Of a stretch of 50,318 nucleotides of DNA, positions 1 to 50,318 are shown piece after piece. This stretch comes from Geosiphon pyriformis uo1. Taxonomy: Eukaryota > Fungi > Glomeromycota. Every line of letters starts with the position of its first letter. Positions within the stretch are counted from its first letter, which is position 1. The translations under genes were made by a program, and so were the position numbers. Location of the stretch: positions 1 to 50,318 of the forward strand of contig JAAOMT010000281.1 in NCBI GenBank assembly GCA_016748015.1, given 5' to 3'. The notes below the pieces were generated by a model, which worked only from the letters and a program-made list of their open reading frames with translations, had not been told where the DNA came from and did no database searches.

Positions 1-565
1 AATATGAACACCATGTTCTTTATGCTGCGGCCATTTACATTATTCAGTCTAGTGTATTAATTTTTGCATAAGAGATATGGGTCCCACGGTTTTAAGGGTG
101 ATGTGAATTTGATTTCCCATTCTGATTGTATTTAGCCATTTTAGGATAGCCGAGTCAAAAAAAAATGAGTGATGAGGATCTGCTTAATATTACGTTAGTC
201 ATGAGGATCCGCGTAATAATATAAAAAATTTCCAGAAAGTACTAAGGTTTCAAAAAATGACGCTTTGTTTTTAATAGTTAAACCCACCCTTGTATTCTTG
301 TTTTTGCATGAAAAAAAAACGCGTAATTTTTGATCTCAAAATCAACAACTTAGAGGCAGTAACATATATAAAGAGGTGTTCCCTGTCTTTAAGCAAAATT
401 TTATCCTATATAGAATTACTCTTAACTTTATTGACGACGAATTACCGGCGTCCACCAACTCACGAACCCAACAGCTATAACTAGTACGGTTAACGACTCA
501 CTACTCATGACTCACGAATTCAAAGAACACTAAAAAAATCCAAGAGAGATTCATTCTCGTATCGA

Positions 566-1068
566 GTCGTACTAATAACCGCAGGAGGTCTCCAAGGTTA
601 AAAGCCTCCAGTTGATAGAACAATCCAGGTAAGGGTGTTGACGTATCTCTTCTAGCTCTAAGTGTTGAGTGAGGGAGGGGGGCATCCTTTACAGGAAAGA
701 ACCCCAACCTTAACCGAAGAAACTCAACCAAGCACGGGGTTTCCAACTTCTTTATATCGCCAAATGTGGTGTTCTCTAACCACTGTGCATGCACTCATTC
801 TGCCGAATGTCTGCTTTCACTTAGGGTTTATGACATGAATTGTTATACCTCTGTGCGTGTACCCATTCTGCCGAATGTCTACTTCCACTTACGGTCAATG
901 ACATGAATTGTTATTTAACCTCTGTGCTTGCCGCATTCCAGCTAAATGTCTGTTTCCACTTATGGTTGATGATGTGCATCATGGGTTAAACTGTTCCTAT
1001 CTACTATCTAGTGAACGGCAAAATCGGCAGGAAAAGAAGACCCTATTGAGCTTGACTCTAGTTTGATA
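566..1068 (+). rRNA. Degenerate, non-functional 28S/LSU rRNA-derived fragments (copy A)
   Basis: Blocks match conserved eukaryotic LSU sequence in native order: 566-635 (GTCGTACT.ATAACCGCAG.AGGTCTCCAAGGT.AA.AGCCTC.AGTTGATAGAACAAT), 716-738 (GAAGAAA.TCAACCAAGC.CGGG), 991-1068 (CTGT.CCTATCTACTATCTAG...AAAGAAGACCCT.TTGAGCTTGACTCTAGTTTGA). Comparison made from recalled LSU sequence. Confidence 0.9.
781..975. repeat. ~2.8 copies of a 68-70 bp tandem repeat inside the LSU-derived sequence
   Basis: cattc(t)gccgaatgtct...cactta.ggt..atgacatgaattgttat recurs with cattc at 796, 864 and 934. The same array is at ~9346-9540. Confidence 0.9.
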
Positions 1069-1083
1069 CCAACAATTGACGGA

Positions 1084-1503
1084 TAACCATTGCTCACCAA
1101 TGATTCGCGAATTCAACATTCGAATGACAATCACCCACCAATAATTCGCCAATTAACCTTCGAATGTAACCACCACCCACCAATAATTCGAAACTCAACA
1201 TTCGAATAACCACCAGCCACCAAAAATGCGCGAATTCAACATTCAAATATAACCAGCACCCACCAGTAACTCGCAATTCAACATTCGAATAACCACCAGC
1301 CACCAATAATTCGCGATTCAACATTCGAATATGACAACCACCCACCAATATTTCACGAATTCAACCTTCGAATATAACTACCAAACACTAATAATTCGGA
1401 ACTCAACATTCGAATAACCACCAGCCACCAAAAATGCGCGAATTCAACATTCAAATATAACCAGCACTCACCAGTAACTCGCAATTCAACATTCGAATAA
1501 CCA
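1084..1503. repeat. Minisatellite, 10 units of ~41 bp, organised as two copies of a 5-unit block
   Basis: Consensus taaccaccacccaccaataattcgcgaattcaacattcgaa. Diagnostic variants of units 2-5 recur in units 7-10. Confidence 0.95.
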
Positions 1504-1612
1504 ATGAATACGGAATAGAAATTCATGAACAATCGATCATCAAATAACTGAATTAAATTTTAGGATTAGGTGGTGAGGAATTGATAATTGTTACTCTGTT
1601 ATTTATGCTTTG

Positions 1613-1724
1613 CAAGAATAAAGAGTGGGAGGGGGGCAGTTTAAGATTTCTTACAAGAATGAAAAGCGGGAGGGGTAGTTTTAGTTTAGGATTTCTTACA
1701 AGAGTGAAGAGCGGGAGGAGGTAG
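1613..1724. repeat. ~2.5 copies of a 41-45 bp G-rich repeat
   Basis: caagaatgaaaagcgggaggggtagt...ttaagatttctta starts at 1613, 1654 and 1699. Also present at ~10022-10134. Confidence 0.85.
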
Positions 1725-2979
1725 CCACATTTGTCAATTATCTTTTCTATATCCATCTAGTCTATATAGAAAAATTGTTCACCGTTGCCAATTCTGATAA
1801 ACTCTTGTTATTTACTGTTTATTGTTTAAGCCTATTGAAATTTAATTCAGAAATTTGAAATGATCGATATAAAATAGTTAAGAAACCTAATGTATAATAA
1901 ACTATTGTAATTAATATAAGTATTTTTAAATGATAATAGTTCGGTAATAACTTTAAGAATTGCTAAAATTAGCTTAAGTCCAAGCAACAATAACTTTATT
2001 TTTCAAACCACCGATCAAATATACTTCCCGAGACCTTTTATATGCAAATTCCGTTTATTTGATGATCTAATATCGGGTTTAATTATTAAAGTTTATGCTT
2101 TGATATGCTTTTCATCATGTAAAACGAGAACCCTCTGCCCTTTGCTATCGAAATGTATTAATTTCATCAACTACGAATGAAAAATTTAGCATTTTCGAAA
2201 AACAATGATGAGTAAATGTACTTGCTAAAAGTCATGTTCAGTCTGGTCATTCAATACATCCTTTATTTATTACTTGGGAGTTATCAAAAGTTTTTGATGC
2301 TCAAGTGAGGACTTTGATATATCTTAGGATATTATTGTCAAAATCGATCACACGCAATAATGCTTGAATCAAATAGACGAGCGTTTTATTGTTAAATAAA
2401 ATCTAATATCTAAATCTTTAAAATTAAGTCTCGTTTCAGTTAATTAAAATTCCACAATATTTCTTTAACAAAAATAATTTTATTTCTAGAATTTTATTTA
2501 TTTATGCGAAAGTGATTTTTTAATGCACAAATTATTTTTGATACTTTCTAAATTTGATGAAAGAAATATATAATTAAAATTTCGGGGGGGGGGGCGTGTA
2601 GGTGTAATAATTCAGAGATTAATATGATTATTAATTCATTTTGGTTTAACGCATTTATTTTTAGCAGAAATTAATAAAAACAAACTTAATATATATTTTT
2701 TATTTGTCTTTTTCATTTCTATACTAAGCTTTTTAGTAAACGATTAAAAGAAACTGTAAGACTCTTGTACTCTTATTTAAACATTAAACTCTATTATATT
2801 CAAAAATTAATATTATTTAAAATCGCTATGTTGTTTTCTTTCTTTAATCACTTTAAGTTGCAAAAGATTGTTTTATTCAAAGTTGTCTAAAGTAGCTTGT
2901 AAATTCGTTTCAATAATAGAGATATAAAAGATTATTAAAGTGAGAGCATTTATAATTTTTCTCTAATGAGCTTTATGTT

Positions 2980-3316
2980 ATAAGACAGGCAAAATTCCGG
3001 TTTCAAATATCTCATACAACCTTGGCACTAAGTATTGCGTTAAAATTATTCAATATTTATTATTGGATTATTTTTCTGAAATAGTTATTTATAATCTCAA
3101 CTAATTGAGAATATTAGAGCTGTGTTAGAGCATAATATAAAGAAAAAAGTAAAAAGAATGGTTGCAAAAAAAAGGGGTATCTTAAGAAATTTTTATTGGT
3201 CAAATCAAAGAAGAATGGGCAAACCTTCTAGAAAGTTGGTTTTTACTTACATTCATGACATGTATGTCCGTATTCAGGCTTGTATAAATGTCAAAGGAGG
3301 CTTTATTTAATATTAA
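2980..3316 (+). mobile_element. Relic of a Tc1-type (DDE_3) transposase C-terminus
   Basis: Frameshifted translation gives LN-IENIRAVLEHNIKKK, EEWA and YIHDMYVRIQACINVKGG, resembling the Tc1 motifs DLNPIENxW, EEW and MPxRxxAxIxAKGG. Confidence 0.65.
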
Positions 3317-3319
3317 TTT

Positions 3320-6300
3320 ATAGCTTTGAAATTAATGAAACATATTCTGGTTTTTGATATAGAATATATGAGATTATTTTTTAAAAAATTAAATTTCAAA
3401 TTTGCAATATATGTATATGTTAGATTTGATAAAGGTTTTCCATCTTTACCAAAATTATATATATATGTATATATACTTAGCATTGAGAAATTTTTAAACT
3501 TTTAAAATTATGCCAAATTTCAAGTTCTAAAAAGTTTTAAGAATTTTAAAGCCTTTTTATCTCAGTTGTTTGAAAATTCTATTTTAACTTAAAATATTAT
3601 CTGAAATTGCTCGCTTGAAAATTACCGGGTTGCCTTAAATTATTTTTACTTAATTTTGTTGGTAATTTTTATATAAAGTATTATAATTTCAGCAGCAAAA
3701 CACCATATTAACAGGTTTAGTGCAGGTAGCTTTTTTTATTACTGCTTCAGTTTTTGTTATTTTCAAGACTTGATTTATATTTTTAATATTAAAATACGAA
3801 TTTGCTTAATAAATCTATTTTTTAATTCTACAACAAATTAGTTTAAGATTTAAGAATCTAAATATTAAGTATTTATTTCAAATTATTGAACTTTTCTAAA
3901 TTAATATTACCATTTTTTGTCGGCTTTTGTTTAATGCTTTTAAATTGGGGTTAAAAAGCAATTAAGGTGTTTTTATTGGTAAAATACTGAATTAAATCAT
4001 CTTTAAATCAGCAAATAAAATAAATACAACTGATTGGTTTTGAAATTATATGTTTGCTGTATTTACTAAATGAAATAGAAATATTTTAAGAGCTTTAGCT
4101 ATTAATAAGTATTTGCTTCAACTGTATTTGCAATTTTGTTAAATTATTTTTACTTGTTAATTTAAGAATCTTGAAATTTAATATTATATAGTTGTTTTTT
4201 TTGTTTTTTTATTTTCTTCTGTTTTTAAGGTTTTTAAATAATAACTAAAACAGTTTTTGTGCTAGTTTTTAGTTGGTAATTAAATGCTCTTATTACAACT
4301 TAAAATAATATGTTCACAAATAGCAAAGAGTACAAATATTATATATATTAAAAAAGTTATCAAAAATTCTTATTAAAAAAAATAAATTATATAAGTAGTT
4401 TTATAAAAATTACAGCTATTGATCTTTATAATAATTTTAAGTTTAAAATAATTTGTATTGTCAACAAAAAATAATACAATTGTTATAATTCTATGTTTCA
4501 ATTTAAATTTTTTGAAATTTAATAACAGATATTTTTCGTTTTAATAGTACTTAAATAGTTAAATGGCTTTTATAGCTTTGAAAAATTTTATTTATATACT
4601 TTTTAAAAAACCAAATTAATAAGAAAATTAATAATTAGATTTAAAATTAGGTTAGTAACTAAATTAATAAAATTTAACTATTGTTAAAGTTTTTGAGGTT
4701 TTGTAAAAATAAATAATTTAAATAAATTAATGTTATTTTGCATTAAATTATTTAAAGCTATTATTACAGATTGAAATAATAAGCTAATACATAACAAAAA
4801 AACAAGTATTGTATAAAAATAACACAATTAAAATATATTCAACAGAAGTAAATTAAATTTGTATCAATTTAATATATAAGTTTAGTTTTATAAACATTTT
4901 ATTTGCTAATTTTGTCAAAGAATTCGAACTAATATAGTTTTATGTTTTAATTTATTTAACAGTACTTTTCAAAAATTAAGATATTTTCTTTACATGTTTA
5001 GATTAAAAGATATAAGAACATAAAGTTACTGATTCTTAAACTATAAATTATTGATCAAATTAATAATTACATCAATAACTAATTCTAAAATAGAGTGGCT
5101 TATATGTATACTTAAATATAATTGAATAATTAATAAAAATAAAAAAATGAATTAATGCACTATAATTTACTTATTAAAAACAACATACCTGTACGCTGCA
5201 ATTATTTTAAAACTGAAGTTAAAAATAATCAACCCAAGTTTGAATTTAAATTACAATTAAACAACCAGTAAATAAAACTGATTAATTTTTTTTAAGCTAA
5301 TAATTCTAAAATATTTTATTATTTGTTTTTAATTGAAAATTAAAGCAAACAATCTGAATGGATTGCAATATATAATTTAACAAAATTGCTGTTTTAAATG
5401 CACAGTTATCAAAATTAATTATTTTAATTCTATCGTTAATTACTTCTATAATATTATCTAATTGTGTAATGCAACTAATGCAAAAATGCAAAAAAAAACT
5501 TCCAAAAATTTGAAGTTGGAAACTAGTTTCTAAAGTAGAATATAAAGTTGTTATTTACAGTATATTGACTTTTTACACAATTTCACAAATATTATCAAGA
5601 ATTTTGTTTAACAAAAAACAAACAAAAACAATATTTTGCCTAAATTAATTTTTTTAAAAACTGTTTTATTTCATATAATGTCCAATATTATTAAAATTAT
5701 CTATCATAATATATGTTTTAAAACATTTATTCAACTAAAAATTGTCTAAAATTTTAAAATTCATACCAAGTTACATTCACAAGTTAAGACAGCTCTAATT
5801 TTACTCTAATCGAATGCAAAAAATTGGTTTCAAAATTACCATTTGTTACAATAATTAAACTAATCAAGCTTAAATAAAAAAATTAATATTAAAAGTCAAA
5901 AATATTGATTTTGAATGTACAAATAATATCACAATTTTTTCCAAAACTAAAGTATGCCATTGAAGCAACAAAAATCACTTAGTCATTTTTTTACTTTTGC
6001 TCAAACTTACCAATTAAATTTTAAAAAAATTTTGGCCAAACCAAACATAAAATCTCAAAGTTTTAGTTTATTTAATTATCTTAATATAATTATTGAAAAT
6101 TTTGTTATAAACTTAAGAATTTAAATTAAACTAGTTTTAATTGCATTAGTATTAGTTAACTTAATAATTATTAATTTATAGTTTGATAAAAATATTGAAA
6201 AAAATATTTTTGTTGATTTTATTTTTAAATAAAAGATGATTTGTTTTAGTAAATTGTATTTATTATAAGTATCTAAACTTCTTAACTATTAAAAAATGCA

Positions 6301-7860
6301 CTTTTTGTGTATTATTTTTTTAATATCTATATTGTTATATAGTTTGAAATAATACATGACTTAATTATAATATTTAGTTACATATGTAAATTGCTACAAA
6401 TTGAGTTATTGATAAAATAAAGGACAAAAATAATTTATATAAATAAAAAGATAATAAGAATAATTTTATTCTAATTTTTGGTTCAAATACATAACAGATA
6501 AACGAGAAATTAAAAACAATGTAAAATTAATTAAATATATGAACAAATCAATAAATATAATTATTTTCAAAAACTCAGTTGCTAATTTTTCTAAAAAAAT
6601 CTGAAAATAGAAAAAACGGTTATGATTTTTAACAAAAAATAATACAGCTGTTATAATTTTAATAATTTAAAAATTTAAAAACAATATCATTTATGTCCAG
6701 CAGTTATTTTTTTAAAAAATATAAAAGCTAGTTTTTTACTTATCAAGTTATTTTTAACAATATACAAATTAAAAAAAAAGTAATTGCAGAAACTTGATTT
6801 CTATCTTCTCTAAAATTTATTGTCTCAAAAGGGATTGTATGAGGGAAGTAAGATGTAAGGTTTAAGATTTTAGATTGGATGTGAAAAAGTAGTTTCCTTC
6901 TGGAAAAAAAATTATAATTAAATTCCCACTAAGTACAAGAAATATTTAAGAAATAAAAAAACCCGAGCAAGGTCCTTATAAAATGCCTATCTCAATCTAT
7001 TTGTTTAAAGATTTTAATTTATAAAAAAATCTCTTTGTCGAAATTAATGAAGTTTCTTGATTTTAGGATCCTGTTTATTATTTTTTTAAAAATTAACAAT
7101 GCAATACTTTACTTTTGATCAAGAGCATGTTATAACTGGAAAGTTATAGGTAAAAAAAAATTCTTTGAATGTGAAAGTTGCCAATTATTTTTTGTTGAAA
7201 ATGATCTTGCAGTATAAAATATTTTAGAATATTTTACACTTCAAGTTTTATTGAAAAATCAAATTTTTTACCAAATTTCTTAGATCTTAATGTTATAGTT
7301 AATTTATTTATTCAGCTATTATATGTTAATAATACAGAGCAATATTTTATTTTAAAAATAAATTGTTGACTTGATTATTGACTGAATTGGTTAAACTTTT
7401 TTAGAAAAATATAATTGACATAGTATAAAATTTGCAAATCTCTTTCTTATTATTCCAAATTTTATTTGTTAAATATAATCAGCTTTAAATTAATAAAACT
7501 ATTTGTAATTTTAAATCTTTGTTGATTGAAATTGATTTATTTTATTGAATAAATTACAAAATTTAATTCAAAGCTCTTTTTTTCTTTTTTTTACTCATTA
7601 GTTCCAAATTTAAATTAAATCAAAGAGTCATTTTTTGATTAACTAATAAATCAAAATCAATTTTATTTGAAAATTTGGTCTTTGATATACAATTTTTAAA
7701 TATTTTTTTAAAAGTATTTATAGAAAATATGCAGATATATTTTAAATTACGTTTTTTATTTGTTAAATTAATCAAGGTATTTATTGATTTTATACAAAAA
7801 ATACTATTTGATTGTGCTTCTATTTGCAGCAGTTACATAATTTCGATCAAATTTTCATAA
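3320..7860. other. Extremely AT-rich, CpG-depleted block, probably decayed repeat/TE sequence
   Basis: Almost no CG dinucleotides, no credible ORF in ~4.5 kb, and an abrupt return to more normal composition near 7860. TE origin is inference. Confidence 0.5.
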
Positions 7861-9130
7861 TAATGTATTCAGAAAGAGCATTCCGGGCTTGTTTAATTAC
7901 CATTTAAGTTCTGGATGATTAAATAGTGGTATGAAGTACGACAACAATCATAGCTTTCAAAAATTCTCAATCGGGCCACGGTAATATTGCAATTCCAGCT
8001 GTGTCAACTTTGGAATCATATGGAATGATATTTTCTTGCGTAAAATATTTTCCATTAAGTCCTTGTCAGAATTGTGTGAAAAACGTTTTTTTATGAAAAG
8101 GAATTTTTTTGATATTTGACTTGTTTCTTATGATGTGTTTTAGTCATTGCAGATTTACATTGAAATGTAAGATTACAATCTATCGCATGTTCAAAAAAAA
8201 TTTCTATACACAGATATGATAACATAGAGCCATCGATTATAAACAAAAATAACGTGGTCGCATAATTTTAGCCGTCACTGTGGAATGATAATGATTAAAT
8301 TTTTATTATTATTTAAATAAGAGCTTCTTTCAATTTTATTAAGTAAATAAATCAATAATTAAATGACGCAATTAACTCAAAAAATTGATAGTCTAGATGT
8401 TTGATAGATGAGCTAATTAAAGAATTTAGTATAGAAAAAGAAGATAAAATTTACGCTTTAAAAAACGGGGGTATTCGTATAACGCAATAAAGGTCTGTTT
8501 CAAAAAAGGAAGGGGGAAACATCTATTGGACTCGAGTAATTTGCCTTAATGTTTGGAGGCGCTTTCGGCTATGAAATATGAACAGCATGTTCTTTATGCT
8601 GTGGCCATTTACATTATTCAGTCTAGTGTATTAATTTTTGCATAAGAGATATGGGTCCCACGGTTTTAAGGGTGATGTGAATTTGATTTCCCATACTGAT
8701 TGTATTTAGCCATTTTAGGATAGCCGAGTCAAAAAAAATGAGTGATGAGGATCTGCTTAATATTACGTTAGTCATGAGGATCCAGAAAGTACTAAGGTTT
8801 CAAAAAATGACGCTTTGTTTTTAATAGTTAACCCCACCCTTGTATTCTTGGATTCTTGTTTTCACGTTTTCGCGTGAAAAACAAACGTATAATTTTGATT
8901 TCAAAATCAACAACTTAGAGGCAGTAACATATATAAAGAGGTGTTCCCTGCCTTCAAGCAAAATTTTATCCTATATAGGATTACTCTTAACTTTATCGAT
9001 GACGAATTACCGGCGTCCACCAACTCACGAACCCAACAGCTATAACCAGTACGACTAACGACTCACTACTCATTACTCACAAATTCAAAGAACACTAAAA
9101 ATATCCAAGAGAGATTCGTTCTCGTCCCCA

Positions 9131-9644
9131 GTCGTACTGATAACCGCAGCAGGTCTCCAAGGTTAAAAGCCTCCAGTTGATAGAACAATCCAGGTAAGGG
9201 TGTTGACGTATCTCTTTTAGCTCTAAGTGTTGTGTAAAGAAGAGGGGCATCCTTTACCAGAAAGAACCCCAACCTTAACCGAAGAAACTCAACCAAGCGC
9301 GGGGTTTCCAACTCCTTTATATCGCCAAAAGTGGTGTTCTCTAACCACTGTACATGCACCCATTCTGCTGAATGTCTGTTTTCACTTACGGTCTATGACA
9401 TGAATTGTTATACCTCTGTGCATGTACCCATTCTGCCGAATGTCTGCTTCCACTTATGGTCAATGACATGAATTGTTATTTAACCTCTGTGCTTGCCGCA
9501 TTCCAGCTAAATGTTTGTTTCCACTTATGGTTATTGATGTGCATCATGGGTTAAACTCTTCCTATCTACTATCTAGTGAATGGACTGAGCTTGGCAAAAT
9601 CGGCGGAAAAAGAAGACCCTAATAAGTTTGACTCTAGTTTGACA
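9131..9644 (+). rRNA. Degenerate, non-functional 28S/LSU rRNA-derived fragments (copy B)
   Basis: 9131-9200 gtcgtactgataaccgcagcaggtctccaagg...; 9281-9303 gaagaaactcaaccaagcgcggg (one mismatch to recalled LSU); ~9556-9644 cctatctactatctag...gcttggcaaaatc...aaagaagaccct...tgactctagtttgaca. Confidence 0.9.
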
Positions 9645-9659
9645 CCAACAATTGACGGA

Positions 9660-9911
9660 TAACCATCACCCACCAATAATTCACGATTCAACATTCGAAT
9701 ATGACTACCACCCACCAATATTTCATGAATTCAACCTTCGAATATAACTACCAAACACCAATAATTCGGAACTCAACATTCGAATAATCACCACCCACTA
9801 AAAATGCGCGAATTCAACATTCAAATATAACCAGCACCCACTAGTAACTCGCAATTCAACATTCGAATAACCACGCTCACCAGCAATTTGCAATTCAACA
9901 TTCGAATAACC
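9660..9911. repeat. Minisatellite, 6 units of ~41 bp (same family as 1084-1503)
   Basis: Six caacattcgaa-type unit ends were counted. Confidence 0.95.
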
Positions 9912-10774
9912 AATGAATACGGAATAGAAATTCATGAACAATCGATCATCAAATAACTGAATTAAATTTTAGGATTAGGTGGTGAGGAATTGATAATTGT
10001 TAGTCTGTTATTTATGCTTTGCAAGAATAAAAAGTGGGAGGGGGGCAGTTTAAGATTTCTTACAAGAATGAAAAGCGGGAGGGGGTAGTTTTAGTTTAAG
10101 ATTTCTTACAAGAGTGAAGAGCGGGAGGAGGTAGCAACATTTGTCAATTATCTTTTCTATATCCATCTAGTCTATATAGAAAAATTGTTCACCCGTTGCC
10201 AATTTTGATTAACTCTTGTTATTTACTGTTTATTGTTTAAGTCTATTGAAATTTAATTCAGAAATTTGAAATGATCGATATAAAATATTTAAGAAACCTA
10301 ATGTATAATAAACTTTAAGAATTGCTAATATTAGCTTAAGTCCAAGCAATAATTACTTTATTTTCAAACCACTGATCAAATATCCTTGAGACCTTTTTTA
10401 GGTAAGTTCGGATTTAGATTTTAAAATTAGGTAATATTGAGCATGCTTAATATATTTTTTTCACCGTGTAAAACGAAAACCCTCTTCCTTTGCTATCAAA
10501 ATATATTAATTTGATCAACACGAAAAAACCCAAATTTTAAATTGAAAACAACTTTTATTGGAATTTGATAATTTTATTTTAATTTGCCTCAAACTAAATC
10601 CACGCTTAAATACTTTTTCAATGAAGGCAAGGCCAAAACAAAACTTTAATTACTTCAATTTTTGAACCTTTTCATTTAAAAATAGCGAAGCCTTATATTT
10701 AGTGAAATAATTAGAACAATTATAAAAAAATTTATTAAAAAAAGGCAATAGACAATATATCTAAATAAATATTT

Positions 10775-12100
10775 CTAGAAAATTAAATTATCGGGATTAA
10801 ATTTAATTTTAGTGTCCTTATTTTTGATAGTAAAAAAAATAGCCATTAAAGAATGATTTATTGTTACCATAGGAGGACATTGCGACATCATTTGTCCTAA
10901 ATAAGGACCAATATGTGATGCGAAAGCTTCTTCAATTGATGCAGCCTCGGTTCTACCATTGCATTCCTAAATATATAAAAAATGGTTAATAACTGTTAAA
11001 GGATTGTTAAGATTAAAAACAAAATTTTGATTCTATAGCAACTTACCCGGCGTTTCAACTTTATCCCGCTTGTGGTTTTGGGGCCTGGGCATAAATAAAT
11101 ATTGAAATTATCCCCATTATTATCGGAAGTAGCACAGCCACAATCTTTTGGCGATATCCAAAGCTCCTGTCCATGGTGTAAATATTGCGCTTTCTTATAA
11201 CTCTTTGGATACTTGGGTATAAAATCATTATAACATGTCACTCTATATATTTTTAGATTCTTAAAGAAATTTAGCTAATGAGCGAATTTGTAGTTTTCGA
11301 ATCGAGGTTTACCATATGTGTAAACTTTAATCTGAGATAATTCACGCGCTTTTACTGTCAAGATTTCGAAAGCTCCAAGTACAGCAAACACTAAAAATTA
11401 ATGTCATTTAGATGAGTCTTGTCAAGAAATTCGATCAAAATATAAATATTTATGTATCACCACCAAGCCCATGTCCAACAAAACTCAAATTATATGCTGG
11501 TGGAATTCCTTTTTGTCTATGATCAATTTGACGCCTTAGTTCAGTTCACCCAAGTTGAAATTTAAGGGAAAAATTTCTATCGATCATCAGATCATTTGTA
11601 CTTTTGTATCGCGTTTGGAGTAGGTAACTTCAAAATCTAACTCTTTGGCACAAATCTGGATCAAGAAAACTGGTTTTTACGTATGCTTGTTATTTTCGCT
11701 AAGGTAGACGATTGAGATTTGAATTTTAAAATAATGAAATTTCGGGGAATTAATCATAAAGTAATGTAAAGTTTATAATGCAAGATGCTAATACCATAAA
11801 ATTCATCAGTCATTTTATAACGTCTTGATCGTTGACCGGATTTAAACAAAATGCTTCACTAGCGAAAAAGTGAATTTTTTCAATTTTTCTATAAACAGAT
11901 TATCCGATCGGAGTAAACCTTTTTTAGAGAATGTGTTGCTTATATGACGTTTTTCGAGTGTTGAACGACACTTTTCTAATAATTCTACTTGAATTTAACT
12001 GTATAGTTGACTTTAATCTAAAGATAAAAAAATAATTCAAGTATAATTAATTTTTATTTTTGAATTTTTTTCCACAATTTCGAAGGTTTTGCTCACATGG
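10775..12100 (-). pseudogene. Class-3 lipase-like pseudogene (GHGLG)
   Basis: Spliced motifs SFVGHGLG, VYTYGKPRF, YRVTCYNDFIP, YLHHGQELWI and SHIGPYLG. In-frame TAG near 11277 and further stops in the 5' exons. The 5' limit is approximate. Confidence 0.85.
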
Positions 12101-13112
12101 TTAATAAAAAACCAAATAGCCAAATCTATAATTTTGATTTTCAACTGTGATATTATAATTAACAAAAAACTAAAATTTTTTTACAATTAATTTCTCTTTA
12201 ATTAAAATTAATATTCTCAAAATCAATTAGCCATTAGCTCTGTTGAATTAATATACTATCTTTATTTTTTAAACGCAAAATTAATTTTTTTTTAGAAATT
12301 AAATTATTTTGTTTGTAATATTAATAATGCTTGATTTAGAAATTATCTAACATCAAAATTTTGAAATTTTATTTTTATTACATTGGAGTTGTTTTAAATA
12401 GTCTTATTACAAAACTTTCAAAAAAAAGTTTGTAAACCTTGAAAATCTTCAGAAATAGGAAACTCTGCAAAAAATTTGCTAACAACAAAACAAATTGAAG
12501 CATCAGGTGATTTTGACATTCAAGTCATAAATTTTTAGATGTTTAGCAACAACATTATAGCAAATTCGGTAATACAACTAGCATTGCCAAGAACTGAGTG
12601 GTAATGTGTCACTCGTACGATTGGTAATTTACTGGAAAGTACCATCAAGTATTCTGCTGACCAAATCTCAAGCGTAGAGGAAAAGATATTTCCGTTTTTT
12701 TAATATTTCAAGGAGAGTGAGAATTGCGTAAACTAAATTTTGAATAAAATTTTAAGCAAATTTGGATAAATTCTTTAGTCATTTCATATCATTCACCTCC
12801 AAAAATTGAATATCCGGTCCCGATAATAGGAAATCTTATCTGAAATTGGACTATTTGTAGTTCCATAATTCTGAATGAATCTATTAAAAAAGCCTAACAA
12901 AAAACATATAATATCTAATTACAAGATATTAATTAAAAACCTTTATATTGAAATGATAGGAAAAATAATTTTCCAATCAAAATACCATATATTCATTGAG
13001 AAATTAGCCTGTCATCAGGAATAAAATACGATGCCATAGCGTGCCAGGCATATCTTTAGTATGTAGCCAAAAAAATTTTAAACCATCAATGAACCATACG
13101 TATTGATAGGTA

Positions 13113-13189
13113 TAGCAGGCACCAAAAGTAACGCCCGATTTACGTGGGTAACAATATAAAAAATCGGGCGCTACTTTTGGTGCCTACTG
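13113..13189. mobile_element. 77 bp Tc1/mariner-type MITE
   Basis: 29 bp terminal inverted repeats (13113-13141 and 13161-13189, 3 mismatches; right arm reads CAGTAGGCACCAAAAGTAGCGCCCGATTT on the minus strand), a 19 bp spacer, and TA on both flanks. Confidence 0.8.
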
Positions 13190-13476
13190 TACATATATTA
13201 CAGAGCAACCTATTTGGTTGGGTTGGTTGAAAAATTCACTTCAAATCGAAAAATCTCAAACTCAATCTTTAGAATGGATTCAAGAAATATTTGCAATGAA
13301 TTTTGATATAATTTTCAAAAGAAATCTGGATTTTCGATCGAGTATTAATAATTTAAAAAAGTAATAGAACACGATAAATAATTACATGTGGTTTGGCAAC
13401 TTAATCTCGGACCCTTAAAGCATCCTAATTATGTGTGAATTTTTGGCTAGAAAAAAAACAAAGAATATAATTTTCG

Positions 13477-14985
13477 TTATGTAGGATAGAAATGTTGACA
13501 ATCTCCAAAAGTCGTGCCAAACCATGGACCGAAATGTGCAGCATTGCTTAATCTATTTTGTCCTGGATCTTTTCCTAGATTACAATCCTAAAAGTTAAAT
13601 TATATTTAAATTTTAGAATCTTACCCATTTTGCATGTGTAAAATAATATTTATCCTGAAAAGGTTTTATTGCAAATTCTTACCATATTCTCACCAAATTT
13701 TTTCTGAGCATTGGGGAAAAAGCCAGGACATTCATAGACTTTATACAAGCCATTCTTATCTTTTTCTCCAGTAATTGAACTACAATCACAATCTTCAATA
13801 CCCGGAATCCAATATTCAGTTTCGGTATGCCAATATTGTATCCCGTCATTAGATATTTTTGGGAATTGGGAGACATAATCATTTCCGTTGGTCACTCTAT
13901 AAATTTTTACACGATTTTTTCTTTTATAAATCATTTCAGCATTTTTACTATTACCAATACGCGGTTGACCGAACGTAATCACTTCAATTGTTAGGCTCGG
14001 CCATTGAAACATTTTAAAACCACCCGCCATTTCAAAAGTAGCCACCGAAAAGGCCATGAGTACAGCATATGCTTGAATAGTTAAGGCAAAAATTATTTTA
14101 TTAGTTGAGAGATATTTAAAATTAACTCGAAATATTTGAAATTTGAATATTATAATTTTTTACCTCCTCCAGTTCCATGCCCAGTAAAAATTAATCTAGC
14201 TTTTTGGCCAGATATTTTTTCACCTAAAGCCATTATTTCCTTGAAGATAGGTATACGATTTTCATCAACAAGAAATTTACTATCTACCGGTCCTCCAGTT
14301 ATAGTTTCCTTTTTATTGAGAAAGTTTTTACGTTTTTCCCACTGAGACCTCGTCATCTCTGAGCCTATAAAGAAAATTTTCAGAATAAATAGAAAATTAA
14401 ATTGTTGAATCCGAAATTGAAACTAACTTTAAAAATACCTCAAAACACATTCCTCTAAAATACGCAATAATAGTCGCTTTTTTTTCATCCAAGAACACTT
14501 CATATGAAATTGAGTGAGAAAATATAAAAAAGCCAGTAGGGTTGGAAATTTTCTTTTCAAAATTGAAGTTTCATTCACAATAATCTATACTCACCATTTG
14601 AACCATTTCGCGGAAAACAATAAGGAATATTTGCTACTCGAGCCATTTCTGCGAAGAAATCAATTAAAGTTACATCAGTGACTAGTATTTTCGAGGGAGC
14701 TGAGTTTTTTAATTTATCAAACCCCCGAGTTGTTCGTTTTAATAGATTTGCTTTATTCCAATATAGGGTAGAATTTAAGGATGAAATACGTATTTTTATA
14801 GGTGAATTATAAGAACTATCTAATGGTAGCTTTGGTATTGAAGTAAAGTTGTAGGAATTTGAAGATTGGGAATAAGAATTTTTCAAAAAATAAACTAAAC
14901 TACGGGAGAACCATATTATTGTGATAATTAAACATGATCTAGGAAACTTTTCATTCAAAAGTTTTTTATAATTTCGAGACAACAT
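13477..14985 (-). CDS. Class-3 lipase-like protein with Ser-to-Gly nucleophile (GHGTG); 5 exons, one doubtful splice donor
   Basis: Exons approx. 14985-14594, ~14497-14455, 14364-14164, 14071-13683, 13587-13477. Motifs IAYFRG, FTGHGTGG, ITFGQPRIGN, RVTNGNDYV, YWHTETEYWI, AHFGPWFG. The expected donor after FRG reads GAATGT rather than GT. Confidence 0.75.
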
Positions 14986-16149
14986 TCTTTCAAAAAAATA
15001 ACCAGGATAAAAAATTATTTTCAAAAAGCTTTCATAAATTTATGATCTTCAGGGGAAAATTATTTTGTGGTTTCAATATAACCTGGCGAGAGATATCTAA
15101 TGCCTGAAACATATGCATCAAATATTTATTTCATTGAAACAAATAAAAATATGTCAACAATTTCGAGCCTTTATACATGTATATAATAGAGAAATATTTG
15201 AATAAGAATCCTTAACAAATTAGGGGAAATGAATTTATTAGACTTTCAAATAAGCAAATAAACGATTAGTACTATGAAATTGACCTTTGAAAGTTTGTGG
15301 CATATTGTATTGGTGAATAATAAGGTAAATTTATTTTTATGACTTCAATTATAATTGATCAAAATAGATTTTTAAACTATGCACATTATATAAAGAACTT
15401 AAAAAAAAAAAGGGTTTGTCATTGGGAAAAATGGCAAAAATTAAAATAATGATGGTAAAAGAAAGAAAACGTTTTATCTATACAATTTAAAATTAGGGAA
15501 AATTTGAATTTCATATTTTAAAACTTTACAAAATATTTATTTGTGACCTTTTTTTGTTTTCAATTATCAAAAATAGAATCTCAAAAAATATTTGAAAATA
15601 GCATTTCATAAAATCTTTTTAAAAAAATCACAATTATCGAACTTAATCCAATATTCTACCATAATTTTTTATTCTTGATCAAGAAATTTTATATCATTAA
15701 TATTTTTGCACAACATGTAAATGATTATTTTTTTTGGAAATTCTTAAAATATTGAATAGTCAAAATAATATAAGATTCATTTATTTTTAATTATCCCACC
15801 CTGAATGAAATTCTATTATCACAAATAAAGTAGTTTTCGATAAATGAATTTCTATATACAGTATATCTTTAAATAAAATTAATAAATTAATAAAATATGC
15901 CAAAAAACATAACACATTTCCCCGTTCTATTTACATTACTAATTTTTTTTTAAAAATATAATAAACTCTTAATTTATATTTTATATTGCTCCTTTCCAAT
16001 ATAATAACCTATAAAGTATTGATAAAACAGCAAAAAAAAAATTTCCGATTCAAAACCTTTCATGAATTTATATAAATCATATAATTTTATAACGAATACA
16101 TTCTCTTCCTTTCTGATTCTAATTAATAATTTACTATAAGGCAGTGTAC

Positions 16150-32650: not shown

Positions 32651-34077
32651 ATGGCTAAAGCTCTTAATCTGTTCGCATTTTTCTTTTTGCTCTTTTATCC
32701 TTGCATGAAATTCGGCGCACAAATATCAGGAAGGCAAGGTTTATTTGAATTAAATTTAAGACGTCAACAGAGTCACAAAACCTGGCATCTATATCATAAT
32801 GCTCGAAAACTACAAGTAAGGAATTAACTATATCTTTAAAAAAATAGTTTTTTTTTGACATCAAATTTTTCAAATTAGGCGAAATTGGGACAGAAGTCGA
32901 TTTTTAAAAAATTTCTGAATAGAACAACTCTTCGAGCTCTTAATCCTCGGTCATTCGGTGAGGACGGTTTGCAACGAATACCACCAAAAACTCTTTTAGA
33001 AAGTACAGAACAACTTGATTTGATGGGAATTTACGCAAGAATTGCAAATCTAGGTTATTGTTTAGATAACAATGACATAGGGAAAGTCGTGTCTGATAAT
33101 CAAGTCAAAGGTATACATATAATGTAAGGTCTATCAAAAATCACCTTTTCATTTTGAAATTTACAATATTTTCGATTCTTTGTTTAGCTTATGCTTTTCT
33201 AGTAGATGAAGAAATCATGGTTTTTTTCAAAAGCCCAGAGCTTAGTATCGAAGCATGGCAACAAAGAAAAAACACTATGGTAGATTATCGTCCCGAATTT
33301 GCTACAAACTCTCCGATGAAGGTGGATCAAGTTTGGTATAAGAATACGTTAATATTCAAAAATAAAATTTTTGAAAAAATTCATAGTCTGATACGCAAAG
33401 GAAATTTGGATAAAAATGAAATTCTTGTATCTTTTACAGGACATGGAATCGGTGGAGGTGAGAGAAAGAGAGGAGTTATTATCTTCAATGAGGAGAATTT
33501 TCGGAATTTCATAGAATTTTTTGAAAACTCTTGCAAAATTTTAGCATATGCAGTTTTGACAGCTTTGGAATTCGCAAAAGAAGTAATAATTGGAACTAAG
33601 CTCCATATCGATATGTTTATTTTTACTTTTGGGCAACCAAGAATCGGTAATGGAGGGTTCTCGAGTTTCGTTAATGATGTCGTAGCAATGTGCCGAATCA
33701 CACATACCAATGATCGAGTTCCCCAATTCCCTTTGGTGGATGATAAAGGGGAAAAATATTGTCATCACGATCAAGAAGCTTGGATTACTCATGATTGTAA
33801 TTGTCTAGAAACCAGCACTACCACAGAATATGTTGTTTATGAGTGTCCTGGATATAAATCCGAATGGGGCGATATTAGAGAGCATCCTGTAAGTCTCAAT
33901 GTTACAAGAGGTTTTAAAGCAATTTTAATTCTCTCAATTTCTGAACTCTTTCTTTTCAACAAGGATTGCAACTTGAAACAAGAAGGATCGGAAGAAGATG
34001 CTATTCGTGCACATTATGGACCATATTTTGGCACAACCATGGGAGACTGCAAATCAATGTGGCAACGATGGTGGTGA
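32651..34077 (+). CDS. Secreted class-3 lipase-like protein with Ser-to-Gly nucleophile (GHGIG), 5 exons, 374 aa
   Basis: Exons 32651-32815, 32879-33110, 33188-33457, 33545-33888, 33964-34077 join in frame (1125 nt) with GT-AG introns. Signal-peptide-like MAKALNLFAFFFLLFY. Motifs FTGHGIGG, FTFGQPRIGN, RITHTNDRVP, AHYGPYFG. Confidence 0.9.
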
Positions 34078-42953: not shown

Positions 42954-44684
42954 ATGTCAACAGAACTCGATCCTTCACAAAGAATCATACGACCATTAAC
43001 TCCTTTAGAAAGATTTTACACAATTCGTCAATCCTTAGACTATTATCACAATATTCTTTCTATGGTCACATACAATCATCCTTTGCTCGCATCGATCCCT
43101 TCCTCAGCCTTAATTGAGACACTAACTCCAATATTAACGGAAACGATCACCCATCTAATTAACAGCCTTCCTTCACTTTCAATCGCAATCACTGATATTA
43201 AATCAGATGAACCGAAATTCGTACATGTTCCAGAAATTAATTTAAATCAGATTATAAGATTCGTATGGTGTCAAGAAAAACAAGATGTTGAGCAAGTTTT
43301 TGAAGATGAACATGATTTGGTTTTTGACCAAGAGGATACCAGAAAGGTATTGTGGCGATGTGTTGTTTTATTATGGAGGTCGAATGGTGAGATGGAAAAT
43401 TTTTCAAATTCGGCCAGCGAAATTCAAACTTCAACCACCGATCAATCGAGCCAAATTGGAATTCTTTTTTGTTACCATCATTCAATAGGCGATGGTCAAT
43501 CCTCATTCGTGTTTCATTCGGAATTATCTTCTCTTCTAAACACCAATTTCTCTAATTTCTCAATTAAATTACAATCAAAATCTCAATCACCTCAAAAAAC
43601 TCTTTCAAAAATTAATACTAATTTCCAACAAATAGCACCACCATTAGAGCACTTTATCAATCTCCGTCCACCGTTCCTCAAATTAATCCGCCTTATTACA
43701 CCTTTATTTCTTATTCCAGAACCTATTAAGAATGTGTTTCTACCTGATTATTGGGGTGGGGATATTCATGCGATGGATGTCAAAAAAGGATTAAAGACCA
43801 AAGTTATAATTATTAAAGTTGAGGAAGAAGTTTTGAATGAGATTTATGAAAAAGCAAAACAGAATGAAACGACGGTGCATGCAGTAATGAATACCGCTAT
43901 GGTTTTCGGAATATATAAACATCTCTTACCCAAGAAAGTGGAAGATAATTCGAAATCTAATGTATCAAACAAAAAAAAAATGATTCGAACATCATCACCC
44001 ATCTCGTTTCGAAAACAATCCTCACCACCAATTCCAGTCACAAATATGGGTAACTACATTAGCGAAGTCGTCGTCGATATACCATTCACCAAAATCCAAA
44101 CAAAAGGCAAAAAGGCAGATAATCTTTTTTGGAATATGGCACGTGATTGGAAAAAACAGTGCCTTCAACAGGTTGAAGGGACCAAATATAAGATTTGGTT
44201 TTTGAAATTACTTGGAAAAAAATTTGGAAAGTGGGAAAAATGGGTAAAAGAGAGAAAGCATGAGAAAAGAGGAATGGGACGAGATGCTAGTGGTCAGATT
44301 TCAAATTTGGGAAGGTGGATTCCGAGATCTGACGAAGAAAGTAAGAAGGATATCGATAAAAATAGTCAAATGAGAGAGGATAATTGGAAGATTATGGATA
44401 TAATTTTTTCGCAATCAGCTAATGTAGGTTTCTTTTTTCTATTTCATATTTTTTTTATCTGAACTGTTATAATTCTTGCTCAAATCACAATAAGTTTCCT
44501 TACAAATCTTTCAAAGGTTATCGGAGGTGCGATTCAAATTAATGCGGCTACATATAAAGATACCTTATCTTTGGCTTTAACTTATCAAGAAGGCGCCATA
44601 GATTCGAGTAAAGTGGAATTGTTTTCTAATGCATTCTTGGATGCTTTGAGAGAAATCGCGCAGAAAGGGAATATTAATATTTGA
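42954..44684 (+). CDS. Alcohol O-acetyltransferase (AATase, Atf/Sli1-like) CoA-dependent acyltransferase, 2 exons, 545 aa
   Basis: Exon 1 is 42954-44423, the intron (gtaggt...aag) is 44424-44516, exon 2 is 44517-44684. N-terminal RPLTPLERF, catalytic HHSIGDG (HxxxD), and ISNLG and FSQSA motifs. Confidence 0.88.
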
Positions 44685-49973: not shown

Positions 49974-50318
49974 TCAAATGTTGATGAACCCATTATACGC
50001 GCTTTTTTTATGTAAATTCGTAAGCACCATAGGAGGACATTGCGACATCATTTGTCCTAAATAAGGACCAAGATGTGATGTGAAAGCTTCTTCAATTGAT
50101 GCAGCCTCGGTTCTACCATTGAATTCGTAAATATATAAGAAATGGTTAATAACTGTTAAAGGATTGTTAAGATTAAAAACAAAATTTTGATTCTATAGCA
50201 ACTTACCCGGCGTTTCAACTTTATCCCGCTCGTGGTTTTGGGGCCTGGGCATAAATAAATGTTGAAATTATCCCCATTATTATCGAAAGTAGCACAGCCA
50301 CAATCTTTTGGCGATATC
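49974..50318 (-). pseudogene. 3' end of another class-3 lipase-like copy (gene continues beyond the window), probably non-functional
   Basis: 50026-50318 matches 10866-11158 without gaps (8 differences in 293 bp). The last-intron acceptor AG is changed to AC at 50127. Confidence 0.8.

Follow-up and report, generated by a model that had tools for sequence, protein, structure and literature searches.

The window analyzed here, the whole 50,318-nt stretch of contig JAAOMT010000281.1 of Geosiphon pyriformis uo1, contains two copies of a dispersed repeat family in which a rearranged fragment of 28S rRNA gene sequence is embedded. We consider it probable that the family arose through a single capture of 28S rDNA, its rearrangement, and its DNA-level amplification within large repeats, and that the core of these repeats is a pol II-type spliced non-coding unit.

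Rearranged 28S sequence in the repeat core

The original prediction described three LSU rRNA-like blocks in native order, preceded by a TATA-like catatataaa near position 363 and followed by a 41-bp array and a G-rich repeat. The block order was confirmed by matches to positions 1967 to 2070, 2449 to 2471, and 2563 to 2663 of the host LSU rRNA gene, which served as reference (genome G000, contig C633, 698261 to 701929, minus strand; Rfam RF02543, 3335 bits). The TATA-like box was likewise found, at 363 to 373, as were a 41.5-nt array and a 45-nt repeat after the rRNA core. Alignment to the host LSU moves the start of the third block, formerly placed at 971, to near 990. The second copy, predicted at 9131 to 10134, is real but longer than that, with window positions 1 to 2187 matching 8575 to 10539. 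The features of both copies and their repeated flanks are as follows.

1 to 2204, + strand: copy A, core unit; ∼2 kb, 35 to 39% GC; left edge truncated by the contig start; homologous to 8575 to 10539; common to all family members compared
363 to 373, + strand: TATA-like box catatataaag; ATATAA core in 27 of 27 aligned copies
534 to 635, + strand: 28S block 1; 84.6% identical over 104 nt to host LSU 1967 to 2070
716 to 739, + strand: 28S block 2; ∼21 of 24 positions matching host LSU 2449 to 2471, read by eye; inside the inferred intron
777 to 985, + strand: tandem array of three 68-nt units; the final unit is degenerate and merges into 28S block 3
990 to 1066, + strand: 28S block 3, matching host LSU 2563 to 2663; 990 to 1015 (26 nt) and 1017 to 1066 (50 nt), 92% each
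1095 to 1503, + strand: array of ∼41.5-nt, ACCACCCACCAATAATTCGCGAATTCAACATTCGAATAT-like units; Tandem Repeats Finder periods 83/125/208, 78 to 92% matches
1613 to 1724, + strand: 45-nt G-rich repeat, 2.5 units (Tandem Repeats Finder)
2188 to 3093, + strand: variant B type right flank of copy A, repeated in many copies; >12 places match, ending at window 3093
5911 to 8574, + strand: variant A/C type left repeated flank of copy B; colinear with C771, C707, C563, C357, and other contigs
8503 to 8520, + strand: PPT-like purine tract in the left flank of copy B
8575 to 10539, + strand: copy B, core; window 1 to 2187 matches at 89 to 98%
8928 to 8938, + strand: copy B TATA box
9099 to 9200, + strand: copy B block 1
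9194 to 9576, + strand: copy B inferred intron
9281 to 9303, + strand: copy B block 2
9342 to 9531, + strand: copy B 68-nt array
9555 to 9644, + strand: copy B block 3
9659 to 9912, + strand: copy B 41/43-nt array
10022 to 10134, + strand: copy B 46-nt repeat
10540 to 12585, + strand: variant A type right flank of copy B; ∼17 places match

The family consensus is 87.5%, 87.5% (21 of 24 positions), and 93.7% (over 95 nt) identical to the host LSU in blocks 1, 2, and 3, respectively, with values of 87.5 to 89% for block 1. Block 3 of copy A is split by a ∼24-nt deletion. Identity of block 2 to the host LSU is 95.7% over 23 nt in copy B and 89 to 96% over 23 to 27 nt in copy B together with three further copies. 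Genome G000 (128.3 Mb, 792 contigs) holds at least three dispersed LSU loci; the published G. pyriformis assembly has 795 scaffolds that total 129 Mb, with a GC content of 29% (PMC9453076, Table 1), and few, dispersed rDNA copies are described for this lineage, in Rhizophagus (PMC6123716). The Rfam search (RF02543) suggested along with the original prediction reported no rRNA in the window, either at the gathering score or at E ≤ 10, because the 28S pieces are short; the only hits (mir-8356, HCV_J7880, and snR67) lie far below thresholds and are chance matches.

The rRNA between the blocks had been described as deleted or replaced, which holds for the first spacer, a deletion, but not for the spacer preceding block 3, which appears to be a diverged and amplified 28S piece. 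The 60 nt preceding block 3 align to LSU ∼2506 to 2555, with 1 of 1000 shuffles aligning as well. Tandem Repeats Finder reports 2.7 copies of the 68-nt unit at 777 to 966, and the units are 63 to 91% alike. The canonical unit is barely similar to LSU (p ∼0.09), and the inter-block pieces gave no significant similarity when compared with the whole LSU (z of 1.5 and 0.5), only the position-restricted test of the last array unit being significant. Judged from these alignments, the 68-nt array derives from the same 28S stretch, part of which was amplified and has diverged. Decay before amplification was uneven, with blocks that are 87 to 94% LSU-like beside an array that is barely LSU-like, a pattern not really explained by the origin that we propose.

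The 31-mer spanning the junction between 28S and non-28S sequence occurs with ≤3 mismatches in at least 44 places in genome G000, versus 0 for a reversed control, and BLAST of the family against the genome gave 59 matches from 100 candidate places. The arrangement is therefore not confined to the two occurrences originally noted, the BLASTN copy-number check does away with a family of only two copies genome-wide, and the proposal of a dispersed multi-copy family with rDNA-derived sequence is supported. We place family size at a minimum of 44 copies and probably at 60 to 100. A metagenome scan for the junction returned 0 matches. All of the ∼45 loci examined against the host rDNA match only the same three intervals, with identical block edges. 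These common edges and the common junction point to a single capture and rearrangement before amplification, and comparison with the host gene shows, at the level of sequence, that the 28S part of the core descends from one captured, rearranged rDNA fragment.

Across 27 cores, pairwise identity averages 0.894 (range, 0.77 to 0.98), and conservation is flat along the core. The original reading of the blocks as kept under constraint while spacers were replaced is not reflected in these 27 copies, in which mean pairwise identity is 0.87/0.94/0.90 in the blocks versus 0.89/0.91/0.91 in the non-rRNA parts; nothing shows selection on the rRNA-like parts. The ∼530 nt of the core at 534 to 1066 go back to a single ancient copy of 28S rDNA corresponding to host LSU ∼1967 to 2663. 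Before the family expanded, this fragment lost ∼320 nt (LSU ∼2127 to 2448, which we take to be an expansion segment), a ∼68-nt piece near LSU 2490 to 2555 multiplied in tandem, and the fragment diverged from the LSU gene by ∼6 to 12%.

Repeat context and mode of spread

The 1.2-kb rRNA-containing arrangement is the inner module of a GC-richer ∼2-kb core, which in turn sits within AT-rich, ORF-free repeat blocks of 6 to 14 kb. Colinearity extends over ∼14.5 kb among contigs C778, C635, C646, C656, and C665. The blocks contain sub-repeat arrays of 68, 41, 45, and ∼138 nt, no ORFs ≥100 aa were found inside them, and their ends lie in low-complexity AT-rich DNA without a base-exact position. No LTRs, TIRs, or poly-A tail were found in the core or the repeat blocks. 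Self-comparison of 22 to 23 kb around three copies (C778, C635, and C646) gave no distant direct repeats ≥120 nt and no distant inverted repeats, and the window contains no inverted repeats ≥60 nt. A tRNA-complementary PBS was not found after the right end of the core, no TSD was identified at the aligned right ends, and the contig ends examined bear no telomere arrays indicative of a subtelomeric location. In the variant A right flank, at least six places share an end at query position 513, corresponding to window position 12585.

This evidence speaks against several element types. Copies A and B are not an LTR pair, as past 2187/10539 they continue into repeated flanks of different type and no distant direct repeats ≥120 nt were found around the three self-compared copies. 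An LTR retrotransposon derivative (LARD/TRIM, Cassandra-like) would have the PPT-like tract at 8503 to 8520 as its only hallmark, with no LTR pair and no PBS, and a TIR DNA transposon or MITE is not supported, with no inverted repeats found in the window (≥60 nt) or at a distance in the three self-compared regions and no ORF ≥100 aa in the blocks. Apparent element ends at window positions 1 and 8575 proved to be an assembly effect, the contig start coinciding in family position with two 20-N gaps.

Among the 44 junction matches, 17 are on 8 contigs holding 2 to 3 copies each, and some closest relatives share one contig (C563, 96.3%; C525, 95.4%). The closest pairs of copies (98%) are on different contigs and could be allelic or haplotig copies. 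All genomic copies listed by BLAST retain the inferred intron, none of the matches skipping 383 nt. We infer a DNA-level mode of spread, in which the blocks would have multiplied through local and segmental duplication and through recombination between large repeats, without an RNA intermediate.

It is possible, though in our judgment unlikely, that a non-autonomous transposable element (Helitron-like, of another type without end repeats, or LARD-like) instead makes up the core, or else the larger block. Such an element would have captured the 28S piece as cargo or filler and would spread by transposition, and the transcript would be element read-out. Dozens of dispersed copies at 77% to 98% identity would fit such an element, as would the occurrence of the core in at least two multi-copy contexts (switch points near window 8575/8651 and 10519 to 10535), a sharp left edge in C778 versus C656, the shared right end at 12585, the purine tract resembling a PPT, and the precedent of TEs with rDNA-derived modules (PMC10946416, Table 2). 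However, no LTR pair, TIR, PBS, or poly-A was found, and ∼100 kb of copies yielded no coding partner. The contexts are few and themselves multi-copy, in contrast to a large number of unique insertion sites, several contigs hold more than one copy, and the termini, being AT-rich, are not definable to the base and hence yield no TSD evidence. The SINE28/SINE3 analogy drawn in the original prediction rests on 28S-derived sequence in a dispersed multi-copy family, but a SINE-like retroposon is hardly credible when the 28S part begins ∼530 nt inside the core and not at the 5′ end, the promoter is of TATA type and upstream, and every copy keeps the intron. Moreover, the core measures ∼2 kb (SINEs, <∼700 nt) and always lies inside larger shared flanks within the 6- to 14-kb blocks, and its shared right end has no LINE-like tail, poly-A, or simple repeat, the homology running on into two alternative repeated flanks. 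Long AT-rich non-coding blocks, sub-repeat arrays, and a promoter-like box are reminiscent of intergenic spacers, and the few, dispersed rDNA copies of the lineage could also suit scattered relics of whole decayed rDNA units, whether from an old tandem array or from intergenic spacer. We regard this origin as highly improbable, as comparison with the LSU, ∼1.1 kb upstream (including the 18S 3′ end), and 1.5 kb downstream gave no other match to 18S, ITS, 5.8S, LSU, or the 1.1- to 1.5-kb flanks in ∼45 copies and five 14- to 23-kb regions, and the blocks present are still 87 to 94% gene-like, so that other conserved rRNA parts should show. A whole decayed rDNA unit or orphon was rejected on the same grounds, LSU 1967 to 2663 being the only part represented in the copies.

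Candidate transcription and splicing of the core

Two runs bear on expression, the DNA run X1 and one public run, X2, whose library type is not on record and for which the tool listing reads “DNA?”. Depth in X2 was taken from one copy region, with reads of copies ≥95% alike pooled, and its contigs give neither RNA ends nor strand. Coverage in X2 is confined to ∼395 to 2010 and begins in the bin directly after that of the TATA box, rising from 0 in 198 to 394 to 3723 in 395 to 591. Overall, depth is ∼0 to 6 over 1 to 394, 391 to 11652 over 395 to 1970 (5484 to 11652 in 986 to 1576 and 391 in 1774 to 1970), 7.7 in 1971 to 2167, and 0 over 2168 to 5900; one X2 contig covers 1840 to 2010. This drop in depth is not due to copy number, because the DNA copy number of 77 to 394 equals that of 395 to 2000. 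A joint 626->1010 (cut +2) with GT..AG ends is present in X2 at depth 1092, versus 0 for the same joint in X1. The inferred intron is itself covered in X2 at depth 51 to 304, and an 85-nt array-length variant, 1081->1167, is also present in that run. The span from 395 to 2010 and the GT-AG joint missing from the DNA run therefore lead us to read the core as a spliced non-coding transcription unit, with the following parts.

395 to 628, + strand: inferred exon 1; start at bin resolution; ends within 28S block 1
629 to 1011, + strand: inferred intron, 383 nt; CAG/GTAAGG ... CTATCTAG/TG; X2 joint 628/1012
1012 to 2010, + strand: inferred exon 2; 3′ end approximate, from X2 depth

Both splice sites are 28S-derived, with the donor CAG/GTAAGG (extended consensus) in block 1 and the acceptor in block 3; the GT is retained in 27 of 27 copies and the acceptor AG in 25 of 27. 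Such a pol II-type non-coding unit would comprise the TATA box at 363 to 373, a start near 395, the two exons and the intron at 629 to 1011, and an end near 2010. Splicing would remove block 2 and the 68-nt array, and the mature RNA would join LSU-like 1967 to 2062 to LSU-like 2585 to 2663 (presumably near domains IV/V), with the 41-nt and G-rich arrays downstream.

Among spliced models built from 15 copies, no ATG-initiated ORF ≥30 aa recurs, and Pfam searches of the ORFs at 501 to 794 (−), 9066 to 9359 (−), 1094 to 1348 (−), 8840 to 9058 (+), and 10996 to 11241 (−) returned nothing. Most copies have an open minus-strand ORF of ∼100 aa; its diversity by codon position (0.106/0.095/0.117) carries no coding signature, with no excess third-position change in either this or the plus-strand ORF, and we rejected a coding reading. 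The RNA structure of the exons is unremarkable (z of −0.5 and −1.6). The TATA box, defined covered span, GT-AG joint, and absence of a recurrent ORF are together what would be expected of a pol II-type spliced lncRNA, on the reading of a run whose library type is not on record. From this one public run we infer that the core is a transcribed, spliced non-coding RNA unit; the X2 span and joint lend weight to the ncRNA source offered as an alternative in the original prediction, and the family is most likely a neutral, repeat-borne lncRNA.

X2 might itself be DNA, from a low-input or enriched library or from another isolate, in which case the 383-nt joint would reflect a deletion in some genomic copies, and the family would be an old, silent repeat that contains rDNA. 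We think this distinctly unlikely: the tool's guess of “DNA?”, the fact that no run is on record as RNA, the depth over the intron, and the array-length variant, a DNA-type difference between copies, would all agree with it, but 198 to 394 and 2168 to 3093 have zero depth though they are repeated as much as the covered part, coverage begins ∼25 to 30 nt past a conserved TATA box, and a GT..AG joint with this donor is missing from X1 and from all genomic copies listed by BLAST. At the other extreme, the copies might be abundantly expressed functional lncRNA genes whose mature RNA displays LSU 1967 to 2062 and 2585 to 2663, so that it could guide or titrate as a decoy those factors that recognize these rRNA segments (modification guides, ribosomal proteins, or rDNA-targeting nucleases and mobile elements) or be a small-RNA source acting on rDNA. 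We consider this very doubtful; if true, such a role would be of consequence in this lineage, where rDNA copies are very few, dispersed, and heterogeneous.

Relation to known rRNA-derived repeats

Animals and plants are known to have repeats with rRNA-gene modules, which include 5S-headed SINEs, Cassandra, SINE28, and Pokey (PMC10946416). SINE28, a 28S-derived SINE of mammals (Longo et al. 2015, PMC4994717, cited from Table 2 of PMC10946416), resembles the Geosiphon family in being a dispersed repeat family bearing a 28S rDNA fragment. SINE28 is short and LINE-mobilized, whereas the Geosiphon 28S sequence is the inner module of a 2-kb unit in 6- to 14-kb repeats, with an upstream TATA box, a retained intron, and no tail. 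The Cassandra and Ajax TRIMs and the 5S-derived SINEs (PMC10946416) likewise have an rRNA-gene module in the repeat's transcription biology, but theirs is a 5S internal pol III promoter accompanied by LTRs or LINE tails, while in Geosiphon the module is 28S and would give splice sites instead of a promoter, and LTRs were not found. The internal tandem repeats of a multi-copy element have a parallel in the IGS-derived repeats of Pokey/mPok of Daphnia (PMC10946416), a piggyBac element with TIRs and an rDNA-targeting transposase, neither of which was seen here. Like rDNA orphons, the family represents a non-functional, decayed LSU part outside rDNA loci; orphons are normally single or low copy and evenly decayed, whereas this fragment was amplified along with unrelated sequence, to at least 44 copies, and is apparently spliced into a pol II-type RNA. 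Non-coding transcripts from repeats are also represented among fungal repeat- or transposon-derived lncRNAs, e.g., in Blumeria (PMC10648671), but exon ends and both splice sites taken from rRNA gene sequence, as in Geosiphon, are not described in the portions of the literature searched.

The 2024 review table of rRNA-module repeats lists no fungal case (PMC10946416), and the Geosiphon family would be one, with 28S sequence as neither promoter nor retroposon head. If the RNA is without function, this would be an ordinary though well-characterized repeat in a 64%-repeat genome. In this fungal group, the family sequences can be a source of contamination when reads are filtered by rRNA, when rDNA copies are counted, and when LSU serves as a marker. 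With 28S sequence furnishing the exon ends and the two splice sites of a multi-copy non-coding RNA, the family would illustrate how a dead rRNA fragment can become gene structure.

Origin of the 28S-derived blocks

The host's own rDNA, whose LSU genes were located by searching the full assembly with Rfam model RF02543, served as the reference for 28S comparison. This search placed a complete gene on contig C633 (3335 bits), one complete and one broken copy on C659, and a partial copy on C751. The host LSU loci (L031-L038; C633, two places on C659, and C751) are few, lie on different contigs and are unlike each other, matching one and the same 100-nt block of the repeat at 92, 91, 88 and 87%; on C659, one copy is split into pieces, and parts of these loci read as N. 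The rDNA of Rhizophagus, a relative, is non-tandem and heterogeneous (PMC6123716), and the published Geosiphon pyriformis assembly comprises 129 Mb in 795 scaffolds with 29% GC and 64% repeats (PMC9453076, Table 1).

In copy A (window 1-2204), BLAST against the host LSU bore out the original prediction of 28S-like blocks in native order, and Tandem Repeats Finder recovered the minisatellites said to follow them. The predicted second occurrence (copy B) is real and longer than proposed, with window 1-2187 homologous to 8575-10539. An Rfam search of the window reported no rRNA because the rRNA-like pieces are short.

Features of copies A and B (window coordinates; blocks in native LSU order and orientation)
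534-635: block 1, copy A; LSU 1967-2070, 84.6% over 104 nt (BLAST)
716-739: block 2, copy A; 21 of 24 positions matching, read by eye
777-966: 68-nt array (Tandem Repeats Finder); counterpart in copy B
990-1015 and 1017-1066: block 3, copy A; LSU 2563-2663, 92% each, ~24 nt deleted between the two parts (BLAST)
1095-1503: array of 41.5-nt units (Tandem Repeats Finder); counterpart in copy B
1613-1724: 45-nt G-rich repeat (Tandem Repeats Finder); counterpart in copy B
9099-9200: block 1, copy B; same LSU interval as in copy A, 84.6%
9281-9303: block 2, copy B; LSU 2449-2471, 95.7%
9555-9644: block 3, copy B; same LSU interval as in copy A, 75%, 11-nt deletion

A search of the assembly (128.3 Mb, 792 contigs) with window 330-1100 returned 59 BLAST matches out of 100 candidate places. 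A 31-mer that covers the junction between block 3 and the non-rDNA sequence following it was found at 44 places when up to 3 mismatches were allowed; its reversed control was found at none. The count of 44 leaves out copies of higher divergence, among them those on C778, C635, C646, C656 and C665. The predicted dispersed, rDNA-derived family is thus present, and the alternative that only two copies exist genome-wide does not hold. Each of ~45 copies fetched matches host rDNA at three identical intervals only, with identical edges, so 28S capture, deletion and rearrangement took place once and preceded amplification. Copies diverge from one another by 2-23%, and against the LSU the family consensus reaches 87.5%, 87.5% and 93.7% identity in blocks 1, 2 and 3. 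The idea that the blocks were kept under constraint found no support in 27 aligned cores, where mean pairwise identity was 0.87, 0.94 and 0.90 in the blocks versus 0.89, 0.91 and 0.91 in the adjoining non-rRNA parts.

The original prediction also held that the sequence between blocks had been deleted or replaced. The 380 nt of LSU following block 1, which presumably contain an expansion segment, are indeed mostly absent from the family. One 16-mer, GCTCTAAGTGTTGGGT, is left in the correct position, matching LSU 2111-2126 at 15/16, and is not significant when scored against the whole LSU. Units of the 68-nt array are 63-91% alike among themselves, and its degenerate last unit, the 60 nt immediately before block 3, aligns to LSU ~2506-2555, directly preceding block 3's LSU match (1 of 1000 shuffles equal); the canonical unit alone showed no significant match to the LSU (p ~0.09). 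We read this array as an amplified, fast-diverging part of the same 28S fragment rather than as foreign DNA.

Repeat context and neighboring sequences

Homology among copies extends far past window 500-1730, and the 28S-carrying module is part of a larger repeat and not a free-standing element. The core, common to all copies from ~8575 to 10535, has 35-40% GC versus 16-26% around it and carries alternative flanks on either side, each repeated in turn. Its left edge seemed to fall at window 1/8575, but this comes from the assembly: the contig begins at that point, and two other copies are interrupted at the same family position by gaps of 20 N (L040 7274-7293 and L011 620-639). A purine tract (window 8503-8520) lies 55 nt before this repeated assembly break.

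Alternative flanks of the core (window coordinates)
5911-8574 (left) and 10540-12585 (right): variant A; ~10-17 copies, common right end at 12585
2188-3093 (right): variant B; part of a ~14.5-kb block

The ~14.5-kb variant B block is colinear among C778, C635, C646, C656 and C665 at 75-90%. Within the variant A and B repeat blocks we found no ORF of at least 100 aa, no distant direct or inverted repeats and no further rDNA-like sequence; their ends fall in low-complexity AT-rich DNA and are not positioned exactly.

Several other sequences lie at or near these boundaries. Toward the left end of the variant B block (C778:72900-74800, inside L050/L042) is an AT-rich tandem array of ~138-nt (129-138) units whose number varies among copies. 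Just past the block's right end are minus-strand ORFs of 673 and 157 aa (C778:89100-91600, L054), the former with an FVDD motif that looks reverse transcriptase-like by eye. The C681 copy (L046, C681:71900-78000) is truncated on the left, and the stretch adjoining that edge (raw 3186-3451) shares 90% identity over 267 nt with L031 1-265, which lies 1.2-1.5 kb downstream of the C633 LSU; given the integrase-like ORFs beside it, the same retrotransposon seems to adjoin an rDNA copy. On the window's contig, a ~90-nt repeat at 13106-13196, matching many contigs on both strands and its own reverse, resembles a small palindromic element of MITE type. Class 3 lipase (PF01764) ORFs occur at 13650-15024 (-) and 33154-34077 (+), and paralogous DNA on C722, C606, C673 and C771 (72-75% identity) indicates a dispersed lipase gene family adjoining the repeat. 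An intact 502-aa ORF at 42954-44462 (+) weakly matches alcohol acetyltransferase (PF07247); its exact product is absent from the public gene collection.

Probable transcription and splicing of the core

Three public sequencing runs from one sample (X1, X2 and X3), none recorded as RNA, were compared over window 1-5900. X1 covers the whole interval, as expected of DNA, and X2 coverage is limited to ~395-2010. X2 depth is 6 in bin 1-197, 0 in 198-394 and 3723 in 395-591, peaks at 11652 in 1183-1379, and falls to 391 in 1774-1970, 7.7 in 1971-2167 and 0 across 2168-5900. DNA copy number cannot explain this pattern, because window 77-394 and 2188-3093 show the same degree of genomic repetition as the stretch that X2 covers. 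X2 also contains a joint from 626 to 1010, with an equally good fit 2 nt rightward; in that position it takes out 629-1011 (383 nt), and the ends are GT..AG (donor CAG|GTAAGG, acceptor CTATCTAG|TG). X2 has this joint at a depth of 1092, X1 at 0, and none of the BLAST matches listed is a genomic copy without the stretch. Some X2 depth remains over the intron (51-304), as expected for unspliced RNA.

We infer that X2 is probably RNA-derived and the core a spliced transcription unit, in keeping with the predicted role as an ncRNA source. Both splice sites would themselves be 28S-derived: the donor corresponds to ...TAGGTAAGGG of the LSU itself (~2060) and the acceptor to its ...CTATCTACTATCTAG (~2584). 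A TATA box (window 363-373) lies ~25-30 nt upstream of the bin in which coverage begins and is kept in 27/27 copies, as is the donor GT, with the acceptor AG kept in 25/27; conservation of these elements is no higher than that of the core in general. On one X3 contig the 28 nt of window 440-467 stand as three tandem units separated by short spacers, which suggests that exon 1 of some copy contains a mini-repeat of variable length.

Local ORFs had no Pfam match, a minus-strand ORF open in most copies lacks a third-position excess, and no ATG-initiated ORF of at least 30 aa is common to the spliced models of 15 copies. Folded separately, the exons showed no unusual stability (z -1.6 and -0.5).

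Mode of spread and classification

Copies are clustered, with 17 of the 44 junction matches on 8 contigs that hold 2-3 copies each, and the window's contig has three copies in one orientation inside 55 kb. The closest relative of a copy is sometimes on its own contig and sometimes, at up to 98.2% identity, on a different one. Spread by DNA-level duplication of large segments is most likely, and a transposon without terminal repeats is possible. The family displays the defining features of neither a SINE, an LTR derivative nor a TIR transposon, and the SINE-like reading in the original prediction does not hold, the shared right end having no poly-A or other tail.

A 293-nt repeat (97% identity) occurs at window 10866-11158 and 50026-50318 and at C441:129049-129341. 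C441 repeats the core, 2188-3626 and 50026-50318 of the window's contig at 92-98% in partly changed order, and could be either a haplotig or the product of a large duplication of recent date.

A 2024 review of relations between rDNA and transposable elements gives rDNA-derived modules for 5S-headed SINEs, the Cassandra and Ajax TRIMs, SINE28 and Pokey, with no fungal case in its Table 2 (PMC10946416). The Geosiphon family is most suitably grouped with unclassified dispersed repeats or duplicons, and its rDNA-derived module appears to be exonised.
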